DNA of 64,000 nt, taken from assembly GCF_021028975.2 (NCBI RefSeq), contig NC_059432.1, positions 72,540,001 through 72,604,000 on the forward strand, in the 5' to 3' direction. This DNA is from Sphaerodactylus townsendi. Lineage: Eukaryota. Below the pieces are notes generated by a model that was given only the letters and a program-made list of their open reading frames with translations, did no database searches and had not been told where the DNA came from. This document shows positions 17,071 through 50,969 of the stretch, piece by piece. The stretch's first letter is position 1; the number at the start of each line of letters is the position of its first letter. A program made the position numbers and the translations under genes.

Positions 17071-18136
17071 TCTAGAGTTAATACTCATACAGTTCCTGGG
17101 TAGCTGTATTATTTTTCTTTTTTTCCCTGATCTATACTTTTTTTGTCTGTCAATTTTAATGAGAAAATTAATAAAAATATTATTTTAAAAAGTATATCTA
17201 GCTGAGACTCCAAACCCCAGTGATGCCTCTCAGAGTAGACACTACTGGTAACAGCATAGTCCTAAACAGAGTTACACCTTTCTTTGCCTATTCTCAGAGA
17301 AGGGTATATTTTATTTAGGATTACACTGTAAGGGTTTGCCTTAGTATAACTCATTATCATGTGTACAAGTCATGTAACTTTAAATCCAAATACACATTTT
17401 TTCCCTCAGACGAGACACACTGCCTTGATGGTGCAGTGCAGTAGATTATGAGAAGTTCCTAAACTCAAATGCTGCCTGAGTCCTTCTACAATTACTGTGC
17501 CAGTCAGTAGCAGATGAGAAGTTGCAAATAGTTAAGTAAATTATACAAGCATAGGGGAAAATAAGTCATACTGGATCGCATTGGACTAAACATCACAGAT
17601 TTTGGAGCTCTTGTTTTAAAAAATCAGTGGTGCTATGGGACTTTGTAAGAAATGGATGACTAAGCATTATGCATTATCAGAGTCTTTCTTCTGGCAGGAG
17701 GAAAAATAGCAAAAAATAGAAAGCCTCTTCTATGAGGTTTTAGTAAAAGTCTAGTTAGAAGTATTTGAATAGGAAGTGGTTATGCATTCCTAGCCCTTTT
17801 GAGGCTGAAGGGGTACACAGCCCACATAGGACAAATCAATGGTTTGGATCTATCGGAGTGTTTTTGCAGATTTCCACCTGTAGGACATAATGTTCTCCCT
17901 TTCCCCCTCCTACTGCAGCCTGAAATGCCCCCTTAAAATATAGAATTTTGGAGGAGTTATTAGTGGCTGGCTGCAGAGTATGTGGGGAGGTAAGAAAGCT
18001 GAACTCTGCAGAAGAAGATCCAAGCTATTGTTTCTCATGTGAGATTAACTCAAGTCAGACTGGATTGAAACCACATGAAGAACACAATAACACTTCTTCC
18101 TTTCTTCACTCAATTTTGCAGGGCTGTCTGCTGGTG

Positions 18137-18313
18137 ATGTGTGTGGGGACGTGCAGTCGAATTTTAGGCCCATGTCTCTTTACCTTGAGTATGCTTTCCA
18201 TCGTTGCTAACATTTTCCTACTCTTCCCCAGCTGGGAATGGCAATATCTTACAATGGGACGCATCACTAAAAATGCTATTATAATACCAGGAGTGTGGGG
18301 AAGTGGACTACTG
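18137..18313 (+). CDS. TM4SF19: TM4SF19 (L6 family) coding exon 1 (MCVGTCSRILGPCL...GVWGSGLL)
   Basis: L6-family MCxGxC start, ANIFLLFP, GxWGSGLL; CTG|GTAAGT donor; same orientation downstream of UBXN7 as in human. Confidence 0.9.
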
Positions 18314-19917
18314 GTAAGTGGACATGTCAAGTATTTATCCACCCATTTTCCCGATTTATTTAGATTACACTACTTGCTGGACAATCCTGATCCTTCTCTG
18401 TATGATAGTGGCAGACTTTCTTCTGGAAATTACTAAATGCCAGTAGATTTCCTTCCACTTAACATTTATTTCCTGTACTGTATATGTTTTTTAATCAGTT
18501 TTTTACTATTGTTGTACTGTTGTCCATGCCAATAAAGGCTTGCTGATTGATTGGTATCCACCCATTTTTTAATCTTGCATTCCTAATAGGGAACTCAGGA
18601 TGGCATACATAATTCTCTGTCGCTTTTTAATTTTCTCAACTACTCTTGGCTCAGGGTCATCTGATGAGCTTCACCGTTGAGAGGGGATTTAAACTTCAGT
18701 GGCCCTAAGACTAGTTTGATACTCCAGTCTATTACTACACAATATTATCAACTTCATGCTTAAAAGAGGCTGCTTAGCAGATATTTCTTCTCAGGGAACC
18801 CTTGGAACAGTAGTTTTGTGAAGGGAGCTTGGGTTTTCTAACAGCACGTACTTGAAGTTTACATTGGTAGAAAGCTAACATAATTGTTCAATGTAGATAA
18901 ACATTGCATAATTAACCTCTTAAACTCTTCCCACACTATTATGCAAAGTGTACTCCAACTTCACTTTAGCTATTGTGCAAGTGGTATTCCAATTCCAAAA
19001 AAAAAAAAAAATCCACTCTTACTGTTTTTGACACTCAGGGTGGAAAATAATCTGGGGGAGGGGGAATCTCTCTGCCACTCTCTAAATCACCTGACTGGGT
19101 GTACGTGTAATATAAGTTGAGAGTGTTATAAAACACTCTTTTAAAAGAGTGTTATAAGTTATAGAGTGTTATAAAACAGCATGTGATTGGATTGGGGGCA
19201 GAGAAATTAACTTTATTGCTCATCAGTCATTATTTTGCCAACTGTATTCATCAAGGGGTAGAATGTTATTTCGCAGTGCAGTTACAATGAAGGATCTGAA
19301 GAAAGCATCACAAATTTACAGTTATTTTTTATGGTGGTGGTTTTTTGCTTTCATAAGCCACCTTTCAGACAAAAGACAAATAAGAACAAAATATTAACAA
19401 TAATTAATGAACATAAAACCAATAAAATTGAAAATATGATTACAAAATACAGTTACATATTGTTAATAAAGCTAATTCTGAATATGTCCCCATCTGTGGA
19501 TACTTAAATTTAGAGACTAGTACTATGTATAGACAAGCCAGGTCTTTCAATAAACCTGAGAACTCCAGAAAAATTTGGGGAAAAATAGTATGTTGGGGAT
19601 AAGCCCCCTTTCCAAATGACAAAAGCAGAGCATGTAGCTTTGAGATATGGGTGCCCTCTGAGATCTCAGTATCTAATGTAGGGGTTGCTGGAAAAACATA
19701 TAAATATTACCAGCCTTCAAGTCTTGGTTGTGGAAAGGGCCTTTTCCGTTATTGTTTTGGCCTTCCAGTCTATGTCTGCTCCCTTCTCTCCTGCCCTGAA
19801 GGGAGATCTCTTTAAGGTCATACTTGGCAGCAACCACCAGGTGACACATTGCATTCATCCAGGCTCAGCCATATTCACTTGGCAACCCACTACTATTCAA
19901 CAGCAGCCTCCACATGC

Positions 19918-23748: not shown

Positions 23749-26700
23749 GTAATATGATTCAGAAGCGTTTCTTGTTGTCTACCTTTCTCTTGCTGATCCT
23801 TTGCTAGATGCATGGTCCATTTTCTCCATCCATGATCCATCAAGAGTATACTGAAGTAAATGGTAGTTCTAATTATAGCTTGGTTGCTAAAATTCCTTCT
23901 TCTTTTGTAGTCATATTAAGGAAGAATAACCAAAACAGAATGACCAAAACAGACTTTGTCTTGATAAATTAGTGGGAGAGGTCCAAGATGGGAAAGAATA
24001 TGAATCATTGAAGGTCCATTGCTGCTGAGATGACCTGGAAAGGTTTTGTACTAACTAAAGGTTTTGTACTCCACTTCCATGGAGAAAGCAACAAAAAATC
24101 AAATAGAAAATGTCATAATTTAAACAAACTCCTGCTGTTGTGTTTAGAACTGTGAAAAAGGCTGATGAGAAGTACTATGAAACTCAAAAGCTTACCTGCT
24201 CAGTTGGTGCAATATAAAAAATATGATTTTACCTATTTTTATATTTCCTGTTCTTTTGGATGAACATGGCAACCACTGTTTTATACATCTCTCTCTATAT
24301 GAACCTATAAAGAATGATCTATGTTTGTAATCAGTGGCTTTTGTTGTTGCAGGTTGTTCCATATCTGGTTCTTGTGTTGACTGTGAAGAATAAAATGGTG
24401 CTTCCCAGGATGTAATCAGCTATCACTCATCCTTCAATGGAACATATAACATTATCTTCCACAGGAACCTATAAGTCAGCCACTGACAGCTAACCGCTGC
24501 CACCAAGATAGATGTCACTGTGGCATTGAGCTGTAGGCAGGAGATGGGATTCTTAAGTCATGATGAGTTGAACCCTACCATTCTGATCAGCTACTCAGAA
24601 TATTCTTGTGGTATAACAATCCTTTCCAGAGTAATAGGATGCAATTCAATGTTTTTAAAATTAAGTATTCTGATATGTATTTATTTATTTAAACACACTG
24701 AAATTCCTCTACACACCCTTGATTCTTGTACTAAAATGGCAACTGTTATTTCTTTTCTAATCCCCAAAACTCCTGCTAGATGACATCAAGGTACAAAGTA
24801 TCTCTGATACAGGAGACACTGACAGGAGGATTTGGCATGACGTCCAGGCTGTATCAGGCTCTCTAATGGGGCATCCTACCCTTCACGTAGCCCCCTACAG
24901 TTAGAAGGTCAACTCTGGTGAGTTCATGCTGCTTATGGACAAGCCCATGCTGTGGTTTTGCAAGTGGAAAGAAGATCCCATGCAGCTTCAGTACATTAGT
25001 TTGAGGGAGGACCCAAGTTGCATTCTTCAGAGCCAGGGAAGCTAGAAACACACAGAACTTTCCCAGCAAAAAATCAAGCCTGATGAGGGGCAACACCTCT
25101 TTCATTCACATGTGAGATGCTTGAGTTATCCTGATAGACTCCGGAAAAGGGAATTGTCTTCCTTAATGGTTTTCTATTGTCAAAGACAGGCTGATATGGC
25201 AGGAAAAATAAAAATATGGATGAAACAGGATATGGGACCAGCATGATCTTCTCCTCTACTGAAAGAGCCAAGCAGAATATCTCTTGAATATTTAGTTATT
25301 TATTCACAAAATGATGGATTGTAACCTAACTGCATTAGTGCAAAGGCATGCCACTCAAGGCAGATATGTTCACTCCTGTCTTTATATCACCTGTACACAT
25401 GCTGATGGTTCCTAGGCAGCAACCAAGAAAATGTACTTGTAAATACCCTAATTAAGCTTTGCTCCTACCTCAAAACATTAATACTGATGACCACTACTTT
25501 CCACCAATTACAATATTTTCTTCACATTTGCTGAAGTTGAAGGGCAAGTCGTTGCACTTCATTTTTTCAGCAGTAGATTTAAGCGCACATGCTTTCCAAT
25601 ACACTGTAATTGTGATAAGCATGTGCTATGCTTCTTCCTATATGATATTCCAAGGCATGACAGAAAACGGTCACTCCCTCAAATCATTGTTTGTGTAGTT
25701 GAGGATGGTATGGTTGTTGAAGTCCACTGTGAAAGCAAAGAGGATGAATTTAAACTGTTGAACTTTCATGTGCCAAAATATCAAATAAAGTTATTTATTT
25801 TTCTTAAAAAAGGAAATTCAGTGAATGATATTGTTCTAAAATGATATTGTTCTAAAAATGATGTGTTCTAAGACTTCCAGAAGCCACATGCTTCCACACT
25901 ACCTGTTTTTTCTGGGATTTATGCCATTCAGTCACTCATTTATTCCTGAGAGTCCAAACAATATTAATCCCAAACCCATTCATCATCATTCCTGTTTCTC
26001 CCATTCTTACCTCATTTTTCCCAAATGCTGATTTCCTATGATTTTGTGAGCTTCTATCCTAATTGCAACATAATCCTCTTTTCGCTCTTGTTCTCAGAGG
26101 CGTAGCTAGGGAAAATGGAGCCCGGGGGAAACCTGAGTTTTCTGCCTTCCGTACAGGCAGATGCCCTCTCCCACCATTACCAAACAAAGTCACCATCAAA
26201 TTATAGAATATGCCCCAACTCACAAATCTGGGTAAAAGCGAGATACAGGTGATTTTCAACAAATTTTCACAAAGTCATATGATTTTTGCATTGGAATGAA
26301 ATGAAACCACCATGGTTAAAACACACAGATCCTTATGGATCCTCCTGATTTTTGCACTTGGTCACCCCAAAATCACCAGCACATCACAGCTGAAGCCCCT
26401 GGCAACATGTCTGAACACAACAATCACACATCCCATGCTCCATAGCATTGCAGTGGTGCAAAAACCTGCTTGAAAAATATGGATCCTCATGATTTTTTCA
26501 CTGTCACCCCAAAATCACCAGCTGAGCTAGGGGTGGGGGGAGCGAGGCATGGGTTGGGTAGGGATTGGAGAAGGTGGCAAGGAATGTCTAGGAGTGGGGG
26601 AGATGGGGGAAGTGGGGGAAGACACCCGCACAGCAGGGCTGTGAAAAAAAATAAACCAAAATGGCAACCAAGGAATTGTGAAAGGAGGGAAGATGTGCAG

Positions 26701-27229
26701 AAATTTGGTGCTTGAACCGATTCTGATTCAAGCACATCGTAGCAAACCTTTTAAGCTCGGCATATCAACAATTTGAAAAATGCCTAATGTCTCTGCTGCC
26801 ATGGCATCACCCAACCCCAAACAAAAGAGAAACAATTCTTTACATAGTTATTTTTAAAAAATACAGCCCAGTCATGTGTGGTTCTATGTATGATCGAAAG
26901 GAATGCCAAATAATTACAAAAATGAAATATGAGTAAAACAAATTCATTTGTTGTGAGGTGTTGGTGAACGGGCCTGTCACCCAAAAGGTCACTATGTGTC
27001 GCCTTTAACATGCATGTTATACTTTGCCACCACTGGTCTAGAGGATCAACAGCTAAGTGAAGGTCCTTGGGAAAAAAATCCTTTCTCAGGAAAAACCCTC
27101 ATTGCACTATGGTAGGAATTACCTCTGAGTAAAATATGCATAGCATTGAGACTGCAGGGCTGCTAAATTCAATGGTAAATTCTCAAAAACACAAGTTCTG
27201 TATTTTTTTAAATTAGGCCTAACCACTTT

Positions 27230-27383
27230 GGGTTGCCAGCTCTGGGTTGGGAAATTTGTGGAGATTTTGGGACTGGAGCCTGGGGAAGGCAAAGTTTGAG
27301 AAGGGGGAGGGACTTCAGCAGAGTATAATGCCATAGACTCCACCCTCCAAAGCAGATTTTCTCCATCTGGAGGTTGGCAACCT
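27230..27383. mobile_element. MITE with GGGTTGCCA/TGGCAACC ends (hAT-Blackjack-like); related pieces at about 14850-14970 and 54300-54480
   Basis: Inverted termini and shared internal sequence among the copies. Confidence 0.6.
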
Positions 27384-27632
27384 TACAGTGCACAAGCTTT
27401 TGAGCATAATTTCTAAATAGAGCCTCCATGTTCAGAGGCAGTGTATCCCCACTTGAGGGAGAGATAAAAATTTCTCATGATCTCAAAAGTCTACAAAATG
27501 GGATAAAAAAAGAGAAATTATGAAGGATCAAATCTCATCCGTCATCCGTAATATCTCAACAAACCCTCCTTGTTCATAGGCAGTGTATCTGTAAATACCA
27601 GTTGCCGGAGAGGGGAAAAGGCGGTGAGGTAA

Positions 27633-27815
27633 NNNNNNNNNNNNNNNNNNNNNNNNNNNNNNNNNNNNNNNNNNNNNNNNNNNNNNNNNNNNNNNNNNNN
27701 NNNNNNNNNNNNNNNNNNNNNNNNNNNNNNNNNNNNNNNNNNNNNNNNNNNNNNNNNNNNNNNNNNNNNNNNNNNNNNNNNNNNNNNNNNNNNNNNNNNN
27801 NNNNNNNNNNNNNNN
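27633..27815. other. Assembly gap (183 N)
   Basis: Run of N abutting the 3' tail of an L2 LINE. Confidence 1.
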
Positions 27816-29875
27816 CCGCCCTCCCCCTGAGGGCTCAGGGCGGTTCACAACAGGTTAAAACAAACATTAAAACATAATTTAAATATCAATTATATAAAAA
27901 CAGAACCCATTTTAAAATGTGGATGGCGTCTGACTACTCCCCTCCCCCCCTTGTGCCCACGGGAGGCCAGATGACATGGTAGATGTATTTTTTTTTAACC
28001 AGACTGGCCAAATGCCTGACAGAACAGGTCTGTCTTGCAGGCCCTGTGGAAACGCTGTAAGTCCTGCAAAGGCCCTGCCCCTCGTCGAGGCCAGCCTGAT
28101 CATTTTGGGACCAGGGATCACAAGTAGGGGAGGGGCCTACCAGGGCAATATGGGGAGAGGCGGTCCCTCAGGTATGCAGGTTCGAGACCGCGAACCGCTT
28201 TGAAGGTCAAAACCAACACTTTAAACATAATCCGGAACTCAATCAGCAGCCAGTGCAGATGGTATAGGATCAATGTAATTTGATCCCTGCTCAAACTGCC
28301 AGTAAGCAGCCTGGCTGCTACATTCTGAATGAGTTTTAATTTCCGGATCATGGCCAAAGGCAAGCCCGCGTAGTGCGAGTTGCAGTAGTCTAACCTGGAG
28401 GTGACCGTTGCATGGATCACCGTTGCTAGATCAGAACGGGCCAGTTGCCGCGGATGGTAAAAAGCCATCTGGGCCACCCGGGTGACCTGGGCCTTCAACG
28501 ACAAAGCCGGATCCAGGATCACCCCATGGCTTTTGGCCGATGAGGCAAGCTGAAGCGCCTCACCATGCAGCATAGGCAGGCCAAAGGACTCCGGACACTC
28601 TCCCCAACCCAGCCACAGGACCTCCGTCTTTGTAGGATTTAACTTCAGCCAACTCGCACTCAACCAACCAGCAACAGTGTCTAAACAACGCTGGAGAGCA
28701 TCAAGGGCCAAAGACGGGTGGCCCTCCATCATGAACATGAGCTGTGTGTCATCTGCATATTGATGGCACTGCAGCCCAAAACTCCGGACTAAACCTGCCA
28801 GGGGTGCATGTAGATGTTAAAGAGCATCGGGGAGAGGATCGCCCCCTGCGGCACCCCATAAATCCCCCTGACGCCACCTGCAGTCCCCGGTCTTGGAGAA
28901 ATGAAGTCAGCCAACACAAGGTTGACCCCTGCACTCCAATACCAGTGAGGCGGTGGACCAAAAGGTCATGATCTACCACATTGAACCCTGCAGTGAGATC
29001 TAATAACACCAGCAGGGCCGAACCACCTCTGTCCAAGTGAAGCCGAGTTCGTCCATGATGGCAACCAACACCGTCTCAGTCCCATGACCAGCGCGGAAGC
29101 TGGATTGGAAGGGATCCAATATGTTTGCATCATCCAGGAACCGCTGGAACTGCTCCGCCACTGCTCACTCAATTACCTTACCCAGAAACGGAAGATTAGA
29201 AACTGGGCGGTAATTGGCCGGATCCCGAGGATCTAACAGCGGTCTTTTCAGGAGCGGGCAGACCACTGCCTCTTTAAGTCGACCTGGGAAAACTCCTTGC
29301 TCAAGGGAGTTGTTGACAATATCCAACAGGTGGCTCCATAGCTCCTCCCTGCTAGCTTTCACCAACCAGGAAGGGCATGGGTCAAAAGGACAAGTGGTAG
29401 ATCGTACAGCATCCAGTATCCTGTCCACATCCGTCGGGTCAAGTGGGCTGAAGTGGTCCAAACAAGGACCCAAAGATGGCCAAGGGGCCTCCAGTTCACT
29501 TACTGTGTCAATTGTAGCGGGAAGGGATTGGTGGAGAGGCAGAACTTTGTGTGTGAAGTAGTCCGCAAATGCCTCACAGCTTAATGCCAGTTCATTTCTT
29601 TTAGGACCTATGGATGAGGTTGTAAGTATCTGAATTACATTGAACAATTGTGCCGGGCGCGAACTAGCCGTAGCGATAGTGGAAGCGAAATATGTCCGCT
29701 TCGCATCCTTCACTGCACTCTCATAAGACCTCATAAACAATCTATACAAGTGTCGAAACTCCTCGTCAAGTAACCGCCGCCACCCTCGCTCTAGCCGTCT
29801 CAGATCCCGCTTCATCCTTCTCAGCTCCTCAGTATACCAGGGAGCTGGGTTGGCACGGGTACGGAGAGGGCGCCT
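27816..29875 (-). mobile_element. 5'-truncated L2-clade LINE, ORF2 reverse transcriptase with frameshifts
   Basis: ORF pieces with NYRPVSNLPFLGKVIE, LVLLDLTAGF, QYADDTQL (about 28742-28765), LKLNPTKTE, TSRLDYCNS; L2-type 3' tail at the gap. Confidence 0.93.
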
Positions 29876-31199
29876 ATGGTCCAGTGGCTGCTTTCATTGT
29901 GATACCTGAAGTTCTGGCAGTGTGTTGTGTTGTCCTATCTCTGCCACTATTTCCTCTTTTCTTCCACTGTGGGCAAATCAAGTGGAGTTTGACTCTTTCA
30001 TGCATTGAGAAGGCAAAATCAAAACAAAAAAAACAGCCCTCTCTTGGATGGATCAGGTGGGATCTGAACAACCTTTGAAAGATTCCTGATGCCTTTGGCT
30101 GCCTGTTCCTTGACTAGTGCATACAGCTTGTTGTGCATTCTGTACGCAGATAATGAGTCCAAAGCAACAAGCTTGCAAACCATACTCGCCTTTTAATTGT
30201 CTCCCTTGCCTTTTTGGCACCTGTGGCTACGAAGTGTCTCTGTGTAATAATGAGGTTTGCTGGGACAGTCTTCAAGTTTTCTGCTCCCCCCATGGCCCCC
30301 ACACCACCACCCTGTGACCCATTTACCCTAGCCAGGGGTGGGGTCTGGTGCGGCAGGGCTGGGCAGGGACGGATGCATTGGCCTCCGCCACCCTGGTGTG
30401 GCAGGGGTGTGTGCAGTGGCCTCCATCAGCTCTGGTGGGGTGGGGCTGGGTGAGGCTGCCCCGGCAGTGACCTCTACTGGGCCTGGTGGGGCAAGGCGAG
30501 GGGGAGGAGGAGGGGTGTGGGGGTGATTTTCTGCCCCCCACATGACCCTAATGGTGGCTGCCCGGGGCATCTGTCCCCATTCTGCCCTGCGGAAGCTACG
30601 CCACTGGTTGCCAGTCTTGAAGGGACGTCACAGGAAAGTGCAATGAAGAGGAATACAACCAGCATTTCCAAGAGCGAAGGAAAGAGCCCAAGTGGGGATA
30701 CGCAACCAATATATACCCCCAAATGGGTCCTGAGGTAGTATGAGGTAAGCTTTCAGAAAACCCATACACAAGGAATTGATTACTTTTCTGGGGTTTCAAC
30801 AAAAAGATAGGAGAGCCTTGATGAGTCCTCAGGACCCAAGAAGATGCCTGTACTATTCCCTTTAATACTGTCTGATTGATGGGATGGGTGGAAATAAGGT
30901 AAGACATCCTAAGTATGGGGGAAAGGGATCTTGGAGTCAAACGCTGCACAACTTCTTCCCCAAGATGTTCGCAGGACACCTTATTCTGCTCGAGCCGTCC
31001 TATTTTGAGGATGCAAAATTATCACACACACACCCCTCCAAATCATCTGCAAGTCATCTCCTCTTGCTTTGCAGAGCTCAGAAGATGAGGAGACGTCTTA
31101 TTTTTCCCACCTATTTGTGTCGTGCAGAGTGGACCACTATTGGATTGCCATAAATCAGCTGTGACTTGATGGCACATTATACACATATCACACATGTAG

Positions 31200-31460
31200 A
31201 CAGCCAGTATGGTGTAGCGGTTAAGATGCCAGACTAGGATCCGGTTCAAACCCCCCTTGCTGAGTCAACAAAGTGCCCTTGGCCAAGTCACATACTCTCT
31301 GCCTCAATCCTGGCAAGTATTTGCATGGGAGACCTCCAAGGAATATCAGGGGTATGATGCAGAAACAGGCAATGGCAAACCACAACAGAAAGTCTGTCAT
31401 TTTAAAAACCCTAGAGTTCACCATACGTCAGCTGTGACTTGACAGCAAAACACACACAAA
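31200..31460 (+). mobile_element. SINE with tRNA-like head, 5S box-C-like segment and RTE-like tail
   Basis: ggtgtagcggttaag...ggttcaaaccc head; agtatttgcatgggagacc; cagctgtgacttgac + (AC)n tail. Confidence 0.6.
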
Positions 31461-32046
31461 CTTGTACTAATTCATTTTATCCTAAGTGTATTTGTGGCTT
31501 GGTTGCTTGAGACATGCTAGACTTTTCTTTATGGTGTCTGCTTTCTTCTGAATCTTGCTGAACTTTCCCTCTGGCCTTGGTCCACCAAGGCATGTTGGGC
31601 ATATTGTTATCGAAACATCATCTTTGATTGCTCCTCAGATTCACTGCCTCCTTTCATTGTTACCTGTACACCCTCCTGTTTGCTGAGGCCTTACTGTAAT
31701 TAGGCAGTACTGGCAATAAGGTTTAGGTTGCAGAAATCCATAGCAAACAACACTGAGTTAATTTTAATGGAGTTGGGTTGTTGTTGCTCTTACAGCCTAA
31801 ATTCAGAGCCAGCATTTTCTGTATGTTGTCTTTACGAGGATGAAGATGAAAAAATAAATTAGGAAACTTTCACTGCATTTCAGGTAAAAAGGAAGTTAAA
31901 TGATTGGGAATTTCCCATTTGAGCCTCACAAACACTTTGGGTCTTCTCATTCATGCCAGCTAGCAGAACTTAGTGAATCTGAAGCCAAAATGAAATTCTT
32001 CCTGTAATGGGCTGGCGAGAAGGGAGGGATTGAGCCAGCAGCAGCT

Positions 32047-32260
32047 ATTGGGAAACAAGGAAGGGCAAACACAGTTGGGTCATTGCTTCTGCTAACATTG
32101 CAGAATCCACTGTCTATAAAAGGCATCGTTGTTGAGGCAAAAGCTGTCACAGACACTGGGGAGCAGTCTGTGACAGACACCTCGGCAACACCTGTGTGAA
32201 AGCCTAAGGAGGAAAAGATGAAACTGGTCTTCCAAGTCACAGTTGGGCTGCTGGGTAAGA
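32047..32260 (+). promoter_or_regulatory. Orphan TATA promoter with a candidate 37-nt leader exon (MKLVFQVTVGLL-, phase 1)
   Basis: ATTGG 32047-32051, TATAAAAG 32115-32122, first downstream ATG at 32218 with A at -3, G|GTAAGA donor at 32255. Confidence 0.4.
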
Positions 32261-32468
32261 AACTTCAGACTTGAACGATTGAAGTGGGAAGTCAAAAGAA
32301 CTTGCAAGACAGAATTAGAGAGCGAACTTTTCAAATGGGCTTTCAGGGAAAGGCAAATCTGTGAAGCAGTGCTGTGAATACAGCACTCCTTTTTAAAGGA
32401 CGAAAGGAAAAGACAGAGCCACTGACAGCAAACCTTTAAAATACGCAAACCTACAATTTCTTCTAGAG

Positions 32469-33047
32469 CAGGGGTAGGGAACCTTTAACACTCAAAGAGC
32501 CATTTGGACCCGTTTTCCACGGGAAAAGAAAACACTTGGAGCCGCAAATAATTTTTGACATTTAAAATAAAGATAACACTGTATATATTGGGTTTTTTTA
32601 CCTTTTACTCCACTCATTCTGAGAAGCGCATGGATGCGCCCGCCCTGCTGTCTGCAGGGCAGGCAAGGATGGGGCCAGCGGCTTGGCCTTGCCGGCCGCC
32701 GGGAAAGTGCCCGCCTCGCTCGAACGGGGTGGGCGAGAGGGGAAGCCCACGGCACTGCCCAGCTGGCCACGTGCAATTGGTGCACCTGCCCTGCTCCCTG
32801 CAGGGCAGGCAAGGATGAAGCCAGCGGCTCGGCCTTGCCGGCCACCGGGAAAGCGCCCACCCCGCTCCAATGGAGCAGGCGAGAGGGGAAGCCTGCGGCG
32901 CGGCCCAGCCATCCGCGGGCAGTTGGTGCGCCCGCCCTGCTGCCTGCAGGGCAGGCAAGGATGAAGCCGGCGGCTCGGCTCGTGGAGCCGCAGTGCAAGG
33001 GCAGAAAAGCTGCATGCGGCTCTCGAGCCGCAGGTTCCCTACCCCTG
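32469..33047. mobile_element. Young non-autonomous hAT element with an internal 146-bp GC-rich tandem repeat
   Basis: Perfect 16-bp TIR CAGGGGTAGGGAACCT, perfect TSD ttctagag; repeat anchor ctgcagggcaggcaaggatg at 32652, 32798 and 32944. Confidence 0.92.
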
Positions 33048-34093
33048 TTCTAGAGACTTCAGTTGGTTAAGATGTCATTTTAACTAGCATCACAGCAATT
33101 GCTATCTTTATTGGGAGGTTGGCTTGATCCCAGAAGTCTGCTGCCCTTCATGCATGTGCTTATTGGGGCCCACATCAAGAAGGCTGAGTTTAAACAAATG
33201 CTGACCTTTAAACCCAGGTCTCTTTCTCCGAACGTACTATATGCTTACTTAACTATATGCTTAAAGTGAATAGCAGGATAGGGGCTGAATGAGTATTTGC
33301 TGCAGGTAATTCAAGAAAGGACAATTTTGCCGTCATGCTCTTTAACTAGGAAAAGCTGGTGTGGCACAAGTAAGTTTTCTGCTCATTGTTTGTCAAATTA
33401 ATGCACATGCAGGGTGAAAAGTATTTGTAGGGAAGAATTGGCAGAGAGAGCTGGGTTGTCTAACCCTTGTTGGATCAGTTAATTTTGCTCTGACAATATA
33501 CCTCACCAGTTTCTACACCTGGGATCAAAATGGTTTGTGAATAATCCCCTGTAATCCCTGCCCAAACTTCTGCTTTAGCACTATGAGGAAAACATGTTGT
33601 TCTCAGACGAACTGTGCTGAGTCAGCTCTCGTTCTATTTGAGTGTTAGGATTTGAGTCTTGGAAACATGCTGGAGCCATGAGCCAGCATCTTCCCTCTGA
33701 TACAGAAATACTGAGGAATGTCAGATTAACCCCTTATATTTGAACAGCTTGGTTAAGTTTTTGCTTTCCTAAATAGACTAAGAGCCATTCACATGCTTCT
33801 TTCAACCTGGAAAGATTCCGTTTTCAGATGATGACTTTCAGGCTGAGGTAGGGGGATGCATGCTGTGTTGTGCGGCCAGCATGGACTGGCTTCTGATACT
33901 TGATCACGAAGTCATCCCCACCAGTAGACTTTGGGTTGCATTAAAAGCAGCGGACACGGACCTATCAGTTCTCAAGCCCCACTAAAATGAGCTGGATTTG
34001 TGCAAGATCGCAGGGCTCTTGTTCAGTCTTATTTCATTGGTGAGCATTTGTGTGCGTGGGAGAGCCATCTGGATTTTCTGTTCCAAGCTCCAA

Positions 34094-34383
34094 AGCAGTG
34101 GTGTAGTGGTTAAGAGCAGGTGCACTGTAATCTGGAGAACCGGGTTTGATTCCCTGCTCTGCCACTTGAGCTGTAGAGGCTTATCTGGGGAACTAGATTA
34201 GCTTGTGCACTCCAACACATGCCAGCTGGGTGACCTTGGGCTAGTCACAGCTCTTTGGAGCTCTCTCAGCCCCACCCACCTCACAGGGTGCTTGTTGGAG
34301 GGAAAGGAAAGGAGATTGTAAGCCCCTTTGAGTCTCCTTACAGGAGGGAAAGAGTGGGGGGTTATAAATCCAAACTCTTCTTC
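34094..34383 (+). mobile_element. tRNA-derived SINE with L2-like tail
   Basis: A box ggtgtagtggttaag, B box gggtttgattccc, tail tgtaagcccctttgag...ataaatccaaactcttcttc. Confidence 0.85.
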
Positions 34384-34586
34384 AAAATATGTTAAGAGTG
34401 TCCCTCCTTGTTTATAACTACTGTTTTGGTGGATTTGTGACTGATGGTGCAATCCTAAACAGAGCCGGTACCCCTCCATGGTTAGCCCATTGACTTCAAT
34501 GGACTGAGAGGGTATAACTGTGCACAGGATTGGACTGTGAGTGTCAAAAAGGAGTATGCTGCTGATAGTATGTGCCATCTGTGGTC

Positions 34587-34810
34587 AGAAGTCGATCTAT
34601 GGCTACCAATCTTGATCTGCCTTGATCTCAGATTGCAAATGCCTTAGCAGACCAGGTGCTCAAGAGCAGCAGCAGCAGAAGGCCATTGCTTTCACCTCCT
34701 GCATGTGAGCTCCCAAAGGCACCTAGTGGGCCACTGCGAGTAGCAGAGTGCTGGACTAGATGGACTCTGGTCTGATCCAGCAGGCTAGTTCTTATGTTCT
34801 TATGTTCTTA
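34587..34810 (+). mobile_element. CR1 LINE 3' end
   Basis: ctggactagatggac...tctgatccagca followed by a (GTTCTTAT)n tail. Confidence 0.8.
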
Positions 34811-35828
34811 TATAGTTGGCTTTGGTTGTGGTAGAAGAGCTGGAAGTCATCACAGACTGAAGAAAAGCTTCAGTTATCATGATGGACTGAAACAGGCATG
34901 TGCATTGACCCTAAATAGTAAAACAGTCTAAAATATGAAATATGCACAATAGTAATATAAATAGGGGCCCATATGTGCAAGACCCCAGGCCACACTGCAG
35001 TTGTTGAGTGAAAGCACCAAATTTTAGTAGACAAAGTCTGAAGTCAAATGATGCAGCAGCCTTGCAGAAGCTCAGCAGGTAAAGGTCTGGTCAATGTCTA
35101 CATGGCCTGAAGATCCTACGACATCACCTTGACTTTCATGGGGAAAGGATGGGATGGAAACAGAATGAACTACCCAAAGAGAAAAAGCTAATCTGACAAG
35201 ATAACTGTAATTTAAAAATACATATCTGGTTATGTAGCTATGCTATGTAGACATATAGCGATGGCTCACACTTTGGAATCTTATCTTAACAGCAGTGATT
35301 TTTGTGGCCAGAGAGTGCGTTTGTGTTCCACCCAGTTTTGCCATAAATCTTAGTCAAAACAATGCAAAGTAATCTAGCTGTGTAAGAATCTGAGGAACTG
35401 AAACTTGAATTCCCAGCAATTTTTCCTAGCAGAAGCAGATATTAGTAGATAACGCAGTTATCTCTCCAACTTACAATCTGTTAAGGGCCTTTAAAGGTGG
35501 CCAGTTTTTTAGCACGACATTCATACAGTTATTTCATTGCTACACAGTTCTATCAGTTGTCTACTTTGGGATAATGCAGTCTCCTCTGCAAAAGAATATT
35601 CATGGCTGTGATACTGGGGAAAATTTGATTGTCTAAACACCATGGCTGCTTAGTGACAATTCCCTGTGATGTCATTTGTGGCAGCAGCATAACTTTCCCC
35701 CTTTGCATCATTTACTTGATGTACATCACTCTCTGCCCATGGGGAAAAACATATAGTCACCTTTTTCTTTAAACTTAGCTTTATAGGGGGATAGAACAAT
35801 GGGAGAAAAAGGAGGTGGAAGCAGGAAA

Positions 35829-36410
35829 ATGGCAACGGTAGGGACGACGTCGGTGGCACTAACGACAGCGGCAAGACGAGGCGATGGTGGCAGCAGCAGG
35901 GTGAGGCAGTGCATGACTTCGGTGACTCGGTGGCCTGTGCTTTTGCTGGTGGCGACTCTTAGTCTGTTCCAAGTGTCAGCTATGGAAATCTACACACCAC
36001 CGGAGCTCTCTGTGGAGAATGGGACAGAGGCAAAACTGGAGTGCACGTTCACATCAACAGAAGTGATCAGCAGTGCAGCTTCTGTTGCCTGGAGCTTTCA
36101 AGCAGAGGGAGCACCTTCTCCTGTATCATTCTTTTATTATTCCAATGGAAGGGCATATCCTGGGAAATATATACCATTTAAAAACAGAATCAGCTGGTCT
36201 GGAGATCTTAACAAGAAAGATGCATCTATCAGTATAGCAAACACGCGGTTTCAGGACAGTGGCATTTATATCTGTGATGTGAAGAACCCTCCAGATATAG
36301 TTGTCACTCCAGGAGAAATCAGACTCAGAGTTGTGGAGGAAGATGTTAGTTTCTCTGTATTTGAAATGTTTAGTCTATTAAAAATTTTCCTAAGTGTGTG
36401 CTTTGGATAG
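35829..36410 (+). CDS. Intronless MPZL1 (PZR)-derived retrocopy: signal peptide + Ig-V domain + 22-aa hydrophobic tail (193 aa; in-frame upstream ATG at 35799)
   Basis: Close match to recalled MPZL1 (EIYTP..NGTEAKLEC, WSFQ.EGA, RISWSGDLNKKDASI, YICDVKNPPDIVV.PG.IRL.VVE); no introns; AATAAA at 36468-36473. A copy, not the parent locus, so no symbol is given. Confidence 0.88.
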   Translation: MATVGTTSVALTTAARRGDGGSSRVRQCMTSVTRWPVLLLVATLSLFQVSAMEIYTPPELSVENGTEAKLECTFTSTEVISSAASVAWSFQAEGAPSPVSFFYYSNGRAYPGKYIPFKNRISWSGDLNKKDASISIANTRFQDSGIYICDVKNPPDIVVTPGEIRLRVVEEDVSFSVFEMFSLLKIFLSVCFG

Positions 36411-38296
36411 TTTCTGCTGCATTTTGTTAACTGTAATTTCAGATTTCTTTTGTCAGAAAGCAAGTGAAATAAAACCTTTGTGTTAACGAAATTTTTAAGA
36501 CTAATGAGCTAGTTCAAGCCTGCTGGAACGGAATTCTATAGTTGTGGAGTGGTCACTGAAAGGCCTACTTTGTAGATATTTACAGACTGAATTGACGTAA
36601 TGCCATCTTGATCCTTGAAGAGATCATCCATAGGCCCTAATATAAATGTATCACTTCATATCAACATTGTCCTGACTGTAGTTTTATCATCTTATGTGGA
36701 ATGGAGCATAGTTATTGGTGATATTGTTTGTTGTATTATATAATAATTCCCTCTTTTCATCCTCTGAATTCCAGTACAGCTCACCCCTGCCAGTCCTAGT
36801 TTTTTAAAGTAATTGGTGACTGACATTGTATTGTAACAGCAAGTCCAGAGCAACTAGAGCCCCCCCCCACCCCGCCAACATATCCTATAGAGGTAGATGG
36901 AAGCCTTGCTTAGTGTTAATGTCTTTATGCTGCTTTGTAAGTCACCCTAAGGCCAACCTATGGCGCTCCAGATATTCATGGACTACAATTCCCATCAGCC
37001 CCTGCCAGCATGGCCAATTGGATGTCACCTCCCTGCCCTAAGGCTTCAGTTGCTACAAAAATCTCTGAACCAAAAATTTTGGGCTCTAACATAATGTCCT
37101 TTTTAAAAGTGAGCTTCAAAATAAGTTACATTTTTATTATTTTGTAACTGAGCCTGAAAACAATTTTCTTTAGAATGTTATGATTATAATCTGCAGTTTT
37201 TAGAATTCTCTTTTGGGAATTCTGCCCCATAGTAAGTAAAAACTATTCCATATTTTGGTGAAGTCAGGAGTGGGTCTCCAAAGAATTTTCAGCCAGTCCT
37301 TTCTTCACTTTTATAAATATGTTATTTGGGTGAAAAGATACTACTGAAGGGAAAAATCAGGAGGGGCAAATATACTTTCCAGAAAACATTTTTTTAAAAA
37401 AGAAAAGAATAGCTGTAGAAAAATGCCATATAATCTTATTCCTGGTCAAGAAGTTGAAATTCAATAAGGATCAATTAAGAATTAATGACACACTTAAAAC
37501 ACTATGATTATATCATGGTCACAAAACCCTTGATTCCTTATGATCCCACTCATATTCTCATTTTCAGTATTGGTTCCCTGGTAGATGTAAAGATTAGGCA
37601 CTATCCAGTAGGTAGCAGGCCCCAGCTAGCAATGTTTTGAATTCTCATAAAAACTTCACAAGACCTCTAAACACATTATCCATCAGAAGTAGGTACAGTG
37701 AAGGGATACTTTTCCATGCTTGGTATGTTTTTAAAAATAAATGTAGGAATTTTGGTCTGTTTGAAATGGAAATTGAATGAGCCTATGATAATTTTGGTAT
37801 TTTTGTTCTCTATTTGACTTCTGAGGGGGGGAAATCCAAGAATAAAAACCAGACAAGACTACAGGGAACAGAATTGTGGAAGTTCAACTATTCTGATGAC
37901 TCTACTTGTATTATTGTACAAATGTTATCATGGGGACTCCTAAGCAAAGTATTGCATGATGAAATCTCTATAATCACATGAAATGGTGTCTGGCATGTTC
38001 TATAGTTCATGAAGTACTTCTTCAACTTGATCATGGATGCAGTTGAGTGCAGTTGAGTATGCACAAGCTTGATTCCTTTAGTTGGAGGACATTTAGTGAG
38101 GCCATGAACTTGTAAACCACCCCTGAGTGCTGTATGTAGATTATGAAAGCTGTAAGGTCAAAGTACATGTCTTTTTCAGTAATGCTGCTCCAACCTATCT
38201 GTAAATCTGCTGTTAGAGATATGGCACCATTTTAATTTTGCCAGGTTTTTTCATCTGCTATAATTTTTAATGAAAATATATTCACAGTCTTGAGCT

Positions 38297-39369
38297 TTAA
38301 GAGATGTCACAGGTCTTCCACCAACTCTTCTTGCCATCTGATGGATGTTTTGAGCCTAAGGAAGAAGTTGTCAGAGGGATGTTCTGAAGAACTTCATGCA
38401 GTGTGAACATGCTGAAAGAGATTTGCTCATAAGGGGACCGTACCCCATTCTCATATAGGCAGGCAAAGCCTATGGCTGGGATCCCAGTTATTGAGAACTC
38501 TGAGTAAGGCAGTTCGATGTAAGCCAGGTCTGAGTAGGCACTGGGGCCTTCATAAATAACCCAGGGCTCAGTCCAGGTGTCAGCTTCCCTGGGAAAAGTG
38601 CTGAGGTAAATTCCTAGGTTGACTCGGGATCTGGAGCTTGTTGGATGGGAATAGAGCACCCAAGTTGGGATTTGAAAATTAAAATCTGATTTTGAAATAG
38701 TTCCTGTATTGTGTTGCTTGTGTTCTGTATGTACATCACCTGAGGACCTAAGACCAAGAAAATTGCTGTGATGGCCACTAGAAGTTCTGCACAATGTAAG
38801 ACTTTCCTGCTGGTAGAAGAGAGACTGGCTGCAGAGAGAAACCCAAGGTACAGAACCAGCAGCAGGAGGAGGACATTGGTATCTTTTCTCTGTACTAGGC
38901 TGTGGCAAGAAATCTGAGCTGTTAACAGACCTTGTTTCTCTCTGAACCATGTGATGCATGTAGTAAAGAGGAGCTTGGAACCCAATGATGCTGCCATGGC
39001 AACCATGAGGGGGCTCCACAAGCCTTTGCACCAACTGCCCTGGTTGAAACACGGCTCCATCGTCCACGCTAAGTGCCTGCACCCGGAAGCCCAGGGGACT
39101 ACGGGCATTACAGTACAACACATTGCTCCCATCCTCCTCGTCCACAGACACCATCTGACACTCAACAGTCTGCAGGTTTGGGATGAATTCACCAAAGTCC
39201 CAGCTCTGTCCATGGTCGTCACTGTAGAAGGTAAACGCATGTGGGGTCGTTTTACAGAGTTTTCCAAAGCATTCTTTGCAGTCAATGTGGTAAGCATAGG
39301 CTGGAAGGAGTAAACGGCCTGACTTGAGTTGAATGCCATGCCCAGGACCTAGTGCAAAAGTGGCCCAAT
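38297..39369 (-). CDS. NEU4: NEU4 sialidase last coding exon
   Basis: acAG acceptor (phase 1); WATFALGPGHG, Asp boxes SDDHGQSW and SVDDGAVF, CNARS, SAYSDL, ACLYENG; open to the stop at 38297-38299. Confidence 0.95.
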
Positions 39370-39464
39370 CTGTATCAAAAGGAAAACAATTGTGTCAGGA
39401 TGAGTCTGCTATCGGGGGCTCCATGCTCTTCCTACACCCTACAATTGGTTTCTGCATCTCCTAC

Positions 39465-39720
39465 CTTCAATGGTCCTGCCAATAACTTGTTGGGTAAGGT
39501 CAGTCACATGGCTCCAGCTGATGCCCTGGTCTGAGCTAGACACATAGCAGAGACGTGCAGCGTTTTGACCTGTGATGATCTGAAAGGCTTCTGGGGTCCT
39601 GCCCAGCACAGCAATGAAAAACAGGAACACCACACCAGTGAGCTCGTCATAGATAGGGCAAGGGTTCATGGACCGATGGTGGGCTAGAGTTGCAGTTTCA
39701 AGGGCTCGCATATCTTCCCA
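39465..39720 (-). CDS. NEU4: NEU4 middle coding exon (WEDMRAL...HRSMNPCPIYD...SSDQGISW...)
   Basis: 256 nt, AG/GT flanked, phase 0/1; MNPCP motif and Asp box. Confidence 0.95.
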
Positions 39721-40757
39721 CTAGCAAAGAAAGATGAAGAAAGGGTTTAGAGGATCTCACTCATATTCTGACTCGGTTTTCTGTTTGGGGTTTGTTTCTT
39801 ACACAATCATTTATTTTAAAATAATAACTTACTGCCACATCTGAGAAATATGGCCATTAATATGGCAATTAGTTATTCATGGTGTTCAGAAGTGGATGTC
39901 AAGAGGAACACATCCTTTTTTTAACTTGAGGTTTAATTTTAAAAGTTTAAAAATGTTCTAGTTTAAAATACATTAGTTGAATTACATGCAAAATTGTTCA
40001 TTATATTTCTAGAAAACCTCAAAATGGCAATATTATAAAAATAAGAGAATATTTGAAGATAGCATTCGAAAGCATTCATTTATTCATTGGCGTTTCATTC
40101 ATTGGACTGCAGCACGGAGAGCATTAACAGCCTGAGGTCATTGAGATATAGAGTTCATTCATGGGAGTTTCTTTCAGTGAACTGCAGCATAGAAAGCAAT
40201 AACAGCCTGAGGGCATTGAGATACAGACTCTGTTTTTCCTTCTATTCATTCATGGTTGCAATAGTACTTGGTGGAAAGGCTTTCACATAGTGATGTTTCA
40301 TTCAGAACTTATGTATTAGGACCAATATTGTATGAAATAAGATTGGACTATGAGAAGTGATACATTTTGCTATTATAATTTTGAAGCACTATTTCTGTTA
40401 CGGTTACAATAAGCCTACTTGATTTATTCATGATATATGGATGTTAAATGAATGATTTCTGTTTAAAAGAATTGCGTAGAAGAATGTGAATAAGAATTCA
40501 TATGATGATTTAATATGAAATTTGAATAATAATAATAATATATAGTTATTTCATCAGCCAGCCAGTGTACTACGCGTTTTGTCATTTGTGTTTTATTTGT
40601 TAGCTGGCATGAACATGATTCTGAAGAGGTGGCACAGATCTATTCTAAATAATAAATAAACAACTAAAGGAGGAACACACAGTAGTATAGAGACTGATTT
40701 GATGTTGAGAATTCCTCCCTTCCTTTTGCTTTCTGATTACCACATCCCATTGCTTTA

Positions 40758-41024
<267 letters not shown>

Positions 41025-49309: not shown

Positions 49310-50969
49310 TCAGTCTGTAGGTTTTCCTGTCTTATGAGGAAACTGTTGTCTGTACAAGTGTGACACATACTGGACCTCAGGCATGATCATCCTTCGGCAG
49401 ATTTTTATTGTCATATTGTCTAAATCTTGTTTGAGATTGTAGCCCAAGATATTGGCAACCCCTGATTGATAGGGTTTCAATGTTTTGTCTTTAATTTTGC
49501 TTTTATCAACTGCTGTTTTCTCAAAAAGGGCATGTTTCCATCAGTTCCTGCTGCCTCTTCTGCAGAAGTTTCACTTCCTGGTACAAGGATGGTAGGCTCA
49601 TCATGTTATGAATCTTAATCCAAAAGGTATTGTTGAAATGTTTGTAAAGTTTCCAATCAAGTGCACACCAGTCTTTCACCTTTTCCTGACTCTCTGGGCC
49701 ACTCCCCACTCACCATAAGCCACGGGGTCACCTCTTTAAAAGACACGAGGAGGATGGACGTTCCCCACATCACCAGCGCCCACTGCGCAGCTGCCCTTAA
49801 TTTGCCGCTCTCCCACCTCCTTGTCGCGCGGCAAATTAGGTCCTCTGAAAAGAGCAACATTTTCAAAAACCCCGCAGGTGCCGCAGGGGGGTGGGGAACC
49901 TCGGCTGTTTACGCAGGCGGCTGCCGATTTTGTGCTCTGGCCAGCTGGGCAGCTTCCGGCCAATCAGGAAACAAGGAACCCCATTTGCTGTTGTTTAGGG
50001 AGGGTGTCCTGTCAGAAAGTGCTTTCCCGGAAACTGAGACGTTATTGCGCAACAAGGCGATGCGCAGCGACATTGCTCTTTTTTGCTGCTTTTTTTTTGC
50101 TCGAGCTCCACTGTTTTGCGAAAGCTTGGCGAAAGTGCCGCTGAAGCCGCGGGGTTGTCGGGCGGTGTAGAACCCGGAAACTGATAATTTACTTTCATTT
50201 TTCTGCCTCAAGCAATTTGCAACAGGTAGTGACGTCAGCATGTGCAGGCGATCTCTAAAAAACAATGCGTTCAGGCTTATCCAAAGCCGAACTTTTCGGG
50301 TCAGCCAATCAAAATGGAGCCCCGCCTTCGGCTGGCTGCAACTCCCACGTGTAAATGGTGCACACGCGTGCCAGCCAATCAGAACGCTCGATTGCCTCTT
50401 TGACTCTTGATGTGGAACCCCGCGCTATTTCCTGAATGGAAAATGAGTGGGGAACAAATGTCTCCGTTGTCAAAAACCACGGAGGCTTTTCTATGAGGGG
50501 TCACTGCTGGGTTGCACTCAGACGAGGTAAGTGGGGAGTGGCCCTCTGGAGTCAAGGTCTGAACACTTTCTAGGCTCCTGGTGTTCAGCTTGAAATAAAC
50601 CACACCATCCAAATCCCAACACAAAGTGTTCTGCAGAAGGATCATGGACTCATCGAAGTAATTAGCAATCAGTATCAGATGGAAATTCTGCTCAATGTTC
50701 TGTATGATGGATTGGACATAGTAATCGTCATCCTCTGCATTGTTGTCATAGCCAAAGTCAAACCACATGTTGTTCCTTGCGTGGATGTTATAGATCTTTA
50801 CATTCAGATCGTAGTATGTCCATGGAGACGACAGAAATTCATTCACATTGCTGGAGTTTTTAAACGCTGGTGAATAGTTTTTGTAATAAACGTAGGAGGA
50901 TTCCAGCGATAAAATTGGATCCCTCAGGATAGTAAAATAGAAGGTATCTTTTGGCATTACCTTCCTTAC
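49310..50969 (-). pseudogene. GAL3ST2: GAL3ST2 last exon, interrupted by a MITE and a frameshift
   Basis: VRKVMPKDTFYFTILRDP...RNNMWFDFG...YFDES...KLN; resumes after the insert with ESQEKVKDWCALDWKLYKHFN; frameshift near 49522-49530; then KPYQSGVANILGYNL...CRRMIMPEVQY; native stop 49310-49312. Confidence 0.92.
49696..50544. mobile_element. 849-bp CpG-rich PIF/Harbinger-type MITE inside the GAL3ST2 coding exon
   Basis: 19-bp TIR GGGCCACTCCCCACT(C/T)ACC (18/19 match), 3-bp TSD TCT; removing the element plus one TSD restores in-frame LTPESQEK. Confidence 0.93.

Follow-up and report, generated by a model that had tools for sequence, protein, structure and literature searches.

A semi-processed MPZL1 retrocopy in Sphaerodactylus townsendi, probably young and either drifting or weakly constrained

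The stretch of DNA analysed here, called the window, comprises 64,000 nucleotides of the gecko Sphaerodactylus townsendi (GCA_021028975.2, CM037621.2), and window coordinates are used throughout. Positions 35786-36670 of its forward strand are certainly a partly processed, or semi-processed, retrocopy of the species' own MPZL1, the gene for the signalling receptor PZR. That the copy is RNA-derived, from which transcript it came and where its junctions lie are firmly established. The wider reading, which we favour with reasonable but incomplete confidence, is that of a lineage-specific semi-processed copy that is young and is either drifting or weakly constrained.

The parent MPZL1 locus (L001) lies on CM037617.2 beside MPC2, a gene of the MPC family, so the copy, on CM037621.2, resides on another chromosome. 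The closest full-length protein is the MPZL1 of S. townsendi itself (XP_048351571.1, P0121, 291 amino acids), to which the copy protein is 87% identical, the V domain reaching about 92% identity to that of the parent. Comparison of the window with the parent locus by blastn yields three collinear blocks, corresponding to exon 1 (35787-35965, 72% identity), exon 2 (35968-36127, 97%) and exon 3 with the first ~237 nt of intron 3 (36129-36575, 88%). Parent introns 1 (18.4 kb) and 2 (590 bp), both GT..AG, are removed to the base, the copy being continuous at the points where they lie (...AGTCTGT/TCCAAG... and ...GTATCA/TTCTTT...). These exact fusions bear out the proposal of an earlier, sequence-only reading of the window, in which an intronless MPZL1 retrocopy with fused leader and V-domain halves had been recognized, and the parental intron phases of 1, 0 and 1 are those that it had supposed. 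Moreover, four sequencing runs, filed under two organism labels, have contigs with the copy; since they cover genic and intergenic bins to the same extent, they are whole-genome shotgun (WGS) contigs. One of these, from organism B (X3), spans the 5' junction, the exon 1/2 fusion is spanned by contigs in three runs, and the exon 3/intron boundary is also spanned. With these boundaries crossed, the copy is neither an assembly artefact nor cDNA contamination.

All parts of the copy lie on the forward strand. The exon 1-derived part (35786..35967) comprises ~13 nt of 5' untranslated region (UTR), the start codon, a long N-terminal region and the signal peptide, and is strongly decayed, the copy branch showing 19 changes there. 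Sixteen are transitions of the type G>A (12) or C>T (four), several of them outside CpG. The excess of G>A probably reflects decay of a CpG island on its G-rich strand; deaminase editing of the cDNA might also contribute, the numbers being small. The sole indel on the copy branch is an in-frame 9-bp deletion in a GGC repeat of this part, and an apparent 18-bp insertion is ancestral sequence that the parent deleted. The exon 2-derived part (35968..36128), the first half of the V domain, is 97% identical to the parent, and its fusions to the parts derived from exons 1 and 3 are exact. The exon 3-derived part (36129..36342) forms the second half and ends at the old phase-1 donor. At window position 36047, the reference has G (ACG), a silent change; A, the state of the parent and the ancestor, appears in every one of the four WGS runs, the copy's own contig among them. 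Either the assembly is wrong here or only the reference individual carries the G.

As had been noted from the sequence, the coding homology ends at the parent exon-3 donor, where the parent reads G/GTATTAG and the copy reads GATGTTAG. What follows is the retained start of parent intron 3, ~330 bp (36343..36670, +), as delimited by alignment to the parent and to gecko intron 3. The match expected between 36342-36490 and parent intron 3 was obtained by blastn, and the alignment to the S. townsendi parent extends over 36343-36575. The following ~95 bp (36576-36670) align only to the MPZL1 intron 3 of Gekko japonicus (L003) and Paroedura picta (L004); at that point (L001 ~10038), the intron of the S. 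townsendi parent is shorter by at least 700 bp than that of Paroedura and by ~6 kb than that of Gekko. By these alignments, the parent lost this stretch of intron 3, as well as the 18 bp of exon 1 (in frame, at L001 29818/29819), after the copying. Past 36670, no homology to Gekko or Paroedura intron 3 was detected (the scores are reached by 38 of 500 and 443 of 500 shuffles), and the Gekko and Paroedura introns keep aligning to each other beyond the end point of the copy. Homology to parent exons 4-6 is absent in 35601-39000.

These limits also determine what may be said of the transcript end. The AATAAA at 36468..36473 (+), which the sequence-only reading had taken as the end of an mRNA polyadenylated within intron 3, is inherited from parent intron 3 and conserved in all four sequences (copy, parent, Gekko and Paroedura). 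The copy really ends ~200 nt downstream of it, the intron-3 homology running on by about that distance, to ~36670, so that this placement had to be abandoned. Overlapping variant hexamers, AATATA/TATAAA (36639..36646, +), stand ~24 nt before the end of the copy and might be compatible with a weak cleavage site, although they are a candidate only and unproven. No poly(A) run occurs at the 3' end (~36670), where the copy abuts ancestral DNA directly. The idea that the first part of intron 3 is unusually conserved, as it might be if a polyadenylated isoform had been maintained, was rejected, since intron 2 is equally conserved (~72%); introns 2 and 3 are ~72-78% identical among geckos, and the intronic AATAAA is not better conserved than the rest.

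The insertion site can be read from the interval between NEU4 and the TM4SF gene of Gekko japonicus (NEU4 locus L006), which represents the empty site. Window 24162-26082 matches L006 21136-19202 and window 36672-36947 matches L006 19191-18909, collinearly, leaving ~10.6 kb (26083-36671) without a Gekko counterpart, of which the copy is the rightmost component. The 3' junction (36672..36687, +) is exact, as ancestral intergenic DNA resumes at 36672 according to the empty site. There, the window reads CAACATTGTCCTGACTGTAG, gecko intron 3 continues with CAACATC(C/T)TGACC and the Gekko target reads GTGCACTGACTGTAG; CTGAC, a 5-nt microhomology, is thus derivable from either the intron or the target. 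The absence of a poly(A), as noticed earlier, is upheld. Regarding a target-site duplication (TSD), of which the earlier reading saw none, a degenerate 13-bp repeat, ACT(G)TAG(C/T)TTTAT, abuts both junctions, its possible 5' copy being ACTTAGCTTTAT (35773..35784, +), which overlaps the polypyrimidine tract and AG acceptor of a RefSeq model described below, and its possible 3' copy ACTGTAGTTTTAT (36675-36687, +). The repeat reaches a P of ~0.014 once the test is restricted to the junctions, and of 0.03 when the Gekko target is used; searches for an exact TSD (k of 7 or more), or for a local match without restriction, performed no better than chance, and the left side of the comparison is obscured by 9.7 kb of lineage-specific DNA. 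By its sequence, this repeat is a possible degenerate target-site duplication. Capture of the copy inside a long terminal repeat or other element was dismissed, as no long flanking direct or inverted repeats occur in 33500-37600, and the many WGS joints with sides of ~20 nt in copies of short interspersed elements (SINEs) were taken as repeat artefacts. The closest NEU4-bearing Logan contig (L005) ends 770 bp past the NEU4 stop, short of the insertion site.

As a course of events, an MPZL1 pre-mRNA with introns 1 and 2 spliced and intron 3 kept was reverse-transcribed, and the cDNA entered the interval that separates NEU4 from a TM4SF gene, on a chromosome other than that of the parent. Its 3' end, ~330 nt into intron 3, meets the target at the CTGAC microhomology, without a poly(A). 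Reverse transcription may have been primed internally, at the microhomology, on a tailless intron-retaining RNA; alternatively, a cDNA fragment could have been captured at a break. The classic route, poly(A)-primed retroposition of a polyadenylated mRNA, is not likely. The S. townsendi genome may repeatedly have gained copies in this manner, by retroposition of unspliced RNA that is tailless and primed at a microhomology.

Regarding its age, the derived states MEIYTP, SVAWSF and NGRAYPGK are common to the copy and the S. townsendi parent and are absent in Euleptes, Gekko, Paroedura and Eublepharis. Because of these shared derived residues, the insertion is assigned to the Sphaerodactylus lineage, at a time when Euleptes, Gekko and Paroedura had already branched off. 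Of 211 sites in the intron-derived part, the copy branch has altered 9-13 (4.3-6.2%) and the parent branch 11-15. The split between Sphaerodactylidae and Gekkonidae is placed at ~90-100 My and, assuming this figure, the copy would very roughly be ~25-40 My old.

The open reading frame (ORF) spans 35799..36410 (+), with 203 codons ending in TAG, and comprises the N-terminal region, a signal peptide (~residues 39-61), a V-set domain (~62-181) and a 22-residue intron-coded tail. The V-set immunoglobulin (Ig) domain is recognized as Pfam PF07686 (1.2e-20), and the nearest solved structure is the human MPZL1 ectodomain 6igo (7.4e-48, residues 60-182), P0 reaching only 1e-24. In agreement with the sequence-only reading, the frame is intact, having no stop or frameshift, and both Ig cysteines, the core Trp, the first NGT sequon and the D-x-G-x-Y-x-C motif are retained. 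However, its remark on glycosylation applies to that first sequon alone, as the family-conserved second one, just before the second Ig cysteine, has been destroyed by N154S and T156I (DNGTY to DSGIY), at positions where N is conserved in 94% and T in 98% of 119 orthologues.

At the end of exon 3, the old donor GT is mutated (36343 G>A; G/GT to G/AT), and a new GT stands two bases on, at 36345. Because the old donor is destroyed, the intron is read through to a nearby stop, the frame adding 22 intron-coded residues, DVSFSVFEMFSLLKIFLSVCFG. The predicted product consequently ends without the parent transmembrane segment or the cytoplasmic ITIMs (immunoreceptor tyrosine-based inhibitory motifs), as the earlier reading held, the stop lying 22 codons into intron sequence. 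Its further expectation of a clean soluble product is not supported, since the hydropathy of the tail is 1.76 (19-residue Kyte-Doolittle mean) against 3.18 for the parent transmembrane segment, and secretion is not assured because the tail is weakly hydrophobic. In Gekko and Paroedura, the predicted read-through of MPZL1 intron 3 adds seven residues and then stops; a 15-bp deletion, seen by alignment in both the copy and the parent, removed that stop. If translated, the copy would yield a PZR ectodomain that lacks ITIMs and ends in a short tail of weak hydrophobicity.

Two gene models cover the locus. The RefSeq protein XP_048362865.1 (P0123, 225 amino acids) covers the ORF and adds a 5' coding exon, whose coding part (MAHTLESYLNSSDFCGQR) lies at 35261..35314 (+) with a GT donor at 35315, and which is joined to an AG acceptor at 35784-35785, exactly at the 5' junction of the copy. 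This exon stands in DNA without a counterpart in the Gekko interval and has no homologue in any MPZL1. The UniProt/GenBank model A0ACB8FA66 (P0006, 188 amino acids) splices from GAT/GT at 36344/36345 to an alternative last exon at 38006..38056 (+), which exists as a model only. Since a modelled non-MPZL1 exon is hard to explain without spliced RNA-seq reads, transcription of the copy is likely, and judging from these models it is probably transcribed. Exact-protein look-ups with the 203-residue ORF, P0006 and P0008 gave no match, and the 90% cluster of the copy has no Logan-derived members, but S. townsendi RNA seems to be uncovered in both, so that this is no sign of silence. In any case, the 'myelin protein zero-like protein 1' of RefSeq at this locus is a truncated retrocopy and not a second MPZL1 gene.

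Rates of change were obtained over 372 coding nt of exons 2-3, polarised with two outgroups (Gekko and Paroedura). The copy branch carries eight replacement and six silent changes, the parent branch two and two; thus, 14 coding changes stand against four (P 0.03), a rate 3.5 times that of the parent. The omega of the copy branch is ~0.45 (0.40-0.54 for kappa 1-6), and the probability of so few replacements under neutrality is 0.08-0.19. In the parent, the coding rate is clearly below the intron rate (P 0.0001-0.005), for which reason its coding sequence is considered strongly constrained; in the copy, the V-domain coding part has changed by 3.8% and the intron-derived part by 4.3-6.2%, a difference that is not significant (Fisher P 0.2-0.8). 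Furthermore, the absence of stops is expected rather often, since 181 codons would remain open after ~33 random substitutions with a probability of ~0.36. Three of the residues gained, Y124 (D124Y), T149 (M149T) and E181, occur in none of the 119 orthologues; organism B retains M149. The ORF variants among those listed for the four WGS runs comprise four silent and four replacement changes and no stop, at a density like that of the flanks. These comparisons suggest that the copy evolves near its own neutral rate, with constraint at most weak. Overall, these selection tests, which have little power, agree equally with weak or past constraint and with neutrality.

Several features speak against a copy that merely drifts. 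Besides the omega of ~0.4-0.54, which leans to some constraint, only one of the eight replacements falls in columns conserved at 95% or more, which make up 47% of the columns among the 119 orthologues (binomial ~0.05), and no frameshift occurred in 543 coding nt, the one indel on the copy branch being in frame. The start-codon context and the signal peptide (…WPVLLLVATLSLFQVSA followed by MEIYTP) are also retained, the loss of the old donor fixes the read-through to a nearby stop, and the RefSeq model has a spliced 5' exon. These signals are weak and partly overlapping, and none is decisive.

The same features are those on which a functional retrogene would rest, a reading that we hold to be doubtful but worth weighing, in which the copy recruited an upstream exon or promoter and gives a secreted or loosely membrane-associated ITIM-less PZR ectodomain competing with PZR. 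In its favour, the frame is still open after ~4-6% neutral divergence with the replacements mostly outside invariant columns, it still encodes the signal peptide, the cysteine pair, the Trp and the D-x-G-x-Y-x-C motif, and the copy is also present under the second organism label, with no disruption among the variants listed. In addition, a human ITIM-less isoform, PZRb, exists and behaves unlike PZR, according to PMC7290418. However, neutrality is rejected by no test, the coding part changes no more slowly than the intron-derived DNA of the copy and at 3.5 times the parental rate, the family-wide NGT sequon is gone, M149T and D124Y are unprecedented, and the density of ORF variants resembles that of the flanks. 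The tail, moreover, is an accidental read-through of an intron with marginal hydrophobicity, which leaves secretion unassured. The stand-alone functional decoy of the sequence-only reading thus stays unproven, since omega is not significantly below 1, the coding rate equals that of the copy's intron-derived part and the sequon is destroyed; on the sequence, a decoy function is unlikely. Unlikely, too, is its most developed form, a Sphaerodactylus-specific retrogene with its own promoter and leader exon, whose secreted or weakly anchored PZR ectodomain would damp PZR-SHP-2 signalling. As for an MPZL1 duplicate that arose at the DNA level and was afterwards stripped of introns 1 and 2, for which only the presence of intron 3 sequence, unlike in a fully processed copy, would speak, or an assembly artefact or cDNA contamination, these are effectively refuted, because two introns are gone to the base with no parental flank past ~13 nt of 5' UTR, divergence from the parent amounts to 3-28% by segment, the copy preserves ancestral bases lost by the parent, unlike a recent cDNA, and independent WGS contigs span the 5' junction and the exon 1/2 fusion.

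A semi-processed copy, drifting or weakly constrained, is thus retained as the preferred reading, and its surroundings may be described briefly. The ~9.7-kb block to its left (26083-35772) has no counterpart in the Gekko NEU4-TM4SF interval; it is either lineage-specific or was lost in Gekko, and it may have arrived before or after the copy. It includes an assembly gap (27633-27815), ORFs similar to the reverse transcriptase of long interspersed elements (LINEs; 28118-29815, minus strand), a GC-rich stretch with overlapping ORFs on both strands (32492-33053), a tRNA-like SINE (34095-34383) and a SINE with a (GTTCTTAT)n tail (34587-34810), and it also contains unique sequence. To the right of the copy, a 71-bp repeat (36951-37021) recurs at several places, and in either orientation, within parent MPZL1 introns (L001 17931-18034, 27628-27759 and 38637-38694), and its very high read depth indicates a dispersed short element. 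The neighbouring genes are sialidase-4 (NEU4, 38297-40973, minus strand), a galactose-3-O-sulfotransferase exon (50379-50957, minus strand) and an L6/TM4SF exon (17948-18436, plus strand), the NEU4-TM4SF order being the same in Gekko. In human 2q37.3, GAL3ST2, NEU4 and PDCD1 are adjacent, so that this V-set retrocopy lies roughly where PDCD1 lies in human.

Geckos also possess older MPZL1-like paralogues (proteins P0040, P0043, P0090, P0046, P0082 and P0041). Forms of ~212 amino acids, in Gekko, Euleptes and Heteronotia, have a different transmembrane segment and a C-terminal LLYQNV motif, which is ITIM-like, and forms without a transmembrane segment, in Gekko (P0082) and Paroedura (P0041), consist of the ectodomain and a coiled-coil-like tail. 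Ectodomains of the PZR type that lack the PZR tail may thus recur among geckos. In the full-text literature searched with MPZL1 and retrocopy terms, no paper mentioning MPZL1 was among the matches listed.

Were the copy functional, a signalling receptor would have been turned into an ITIM-less ectodomain gene by a single retroposition event, providing a natural experiment on the function of the PZR ectodomain. Even if neutral, it is a dated molecular fossil, indicating that intron-3-retaining MPZL1 transcripts reached the germline and preserving ancestral exon 1 and intron 3 sequence later deleted from the parent. Its tailless 3' junction with microhomology also bears on how retrocopies form in squamates, whose mix of LINE families is unlike that of mammals.

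Among known systems, semi-processed retrogenes have their classic case in rodent Ins1 (preproinsulin I), copied from a partly spliced pre-mRNA with one of two introns kept. Like Ins1, the MPZL1 copy is RNA-derived, with some introns exactly removed and one retained, at a new chromosomal site. However, the intron of Ins1 is complete and spliceable, its coding sequence is entire and its function is clear, whereas the copy keeps only the first 330 nt of the intron, lacks everything downstream, including the transmembrane segment and the ITIMs, and is of unproven function. With processed pseudogenes of the LINE-1 type, it shares the loss of introns, the 5' truncation near the start codon, the location on another chromosome and the CpG decay of a former CpG-island exon, but it differs from them in having no poly(A), a 3' end inside an intron, a 5-nt microhomology and a TSD that is only a degenerate candidate.

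Regarding the product, the ITIM-less isoform PZRb was reportedly described by Zannettino et al. in 2003. In human, according to PMC7290418, it is a splice isoform of the parent gene that is still membrane-anchored. The copy similarly has the same ectodomain without the SHP-2-docking ITIMs, although its truncated form stands at a separate locus and is without a transmembrane segment. Soluble decoy receptors produced by intronic polyadenylation, such as sFLT1, are isoforms of the parent locus with demonstrated expression. The copy resembles this type in its ectodomain, short intron-coded tail and early stop, but differs from it in lying at a separate locus, and a corresponding isoform of MPZL1 itself is hypothetical.

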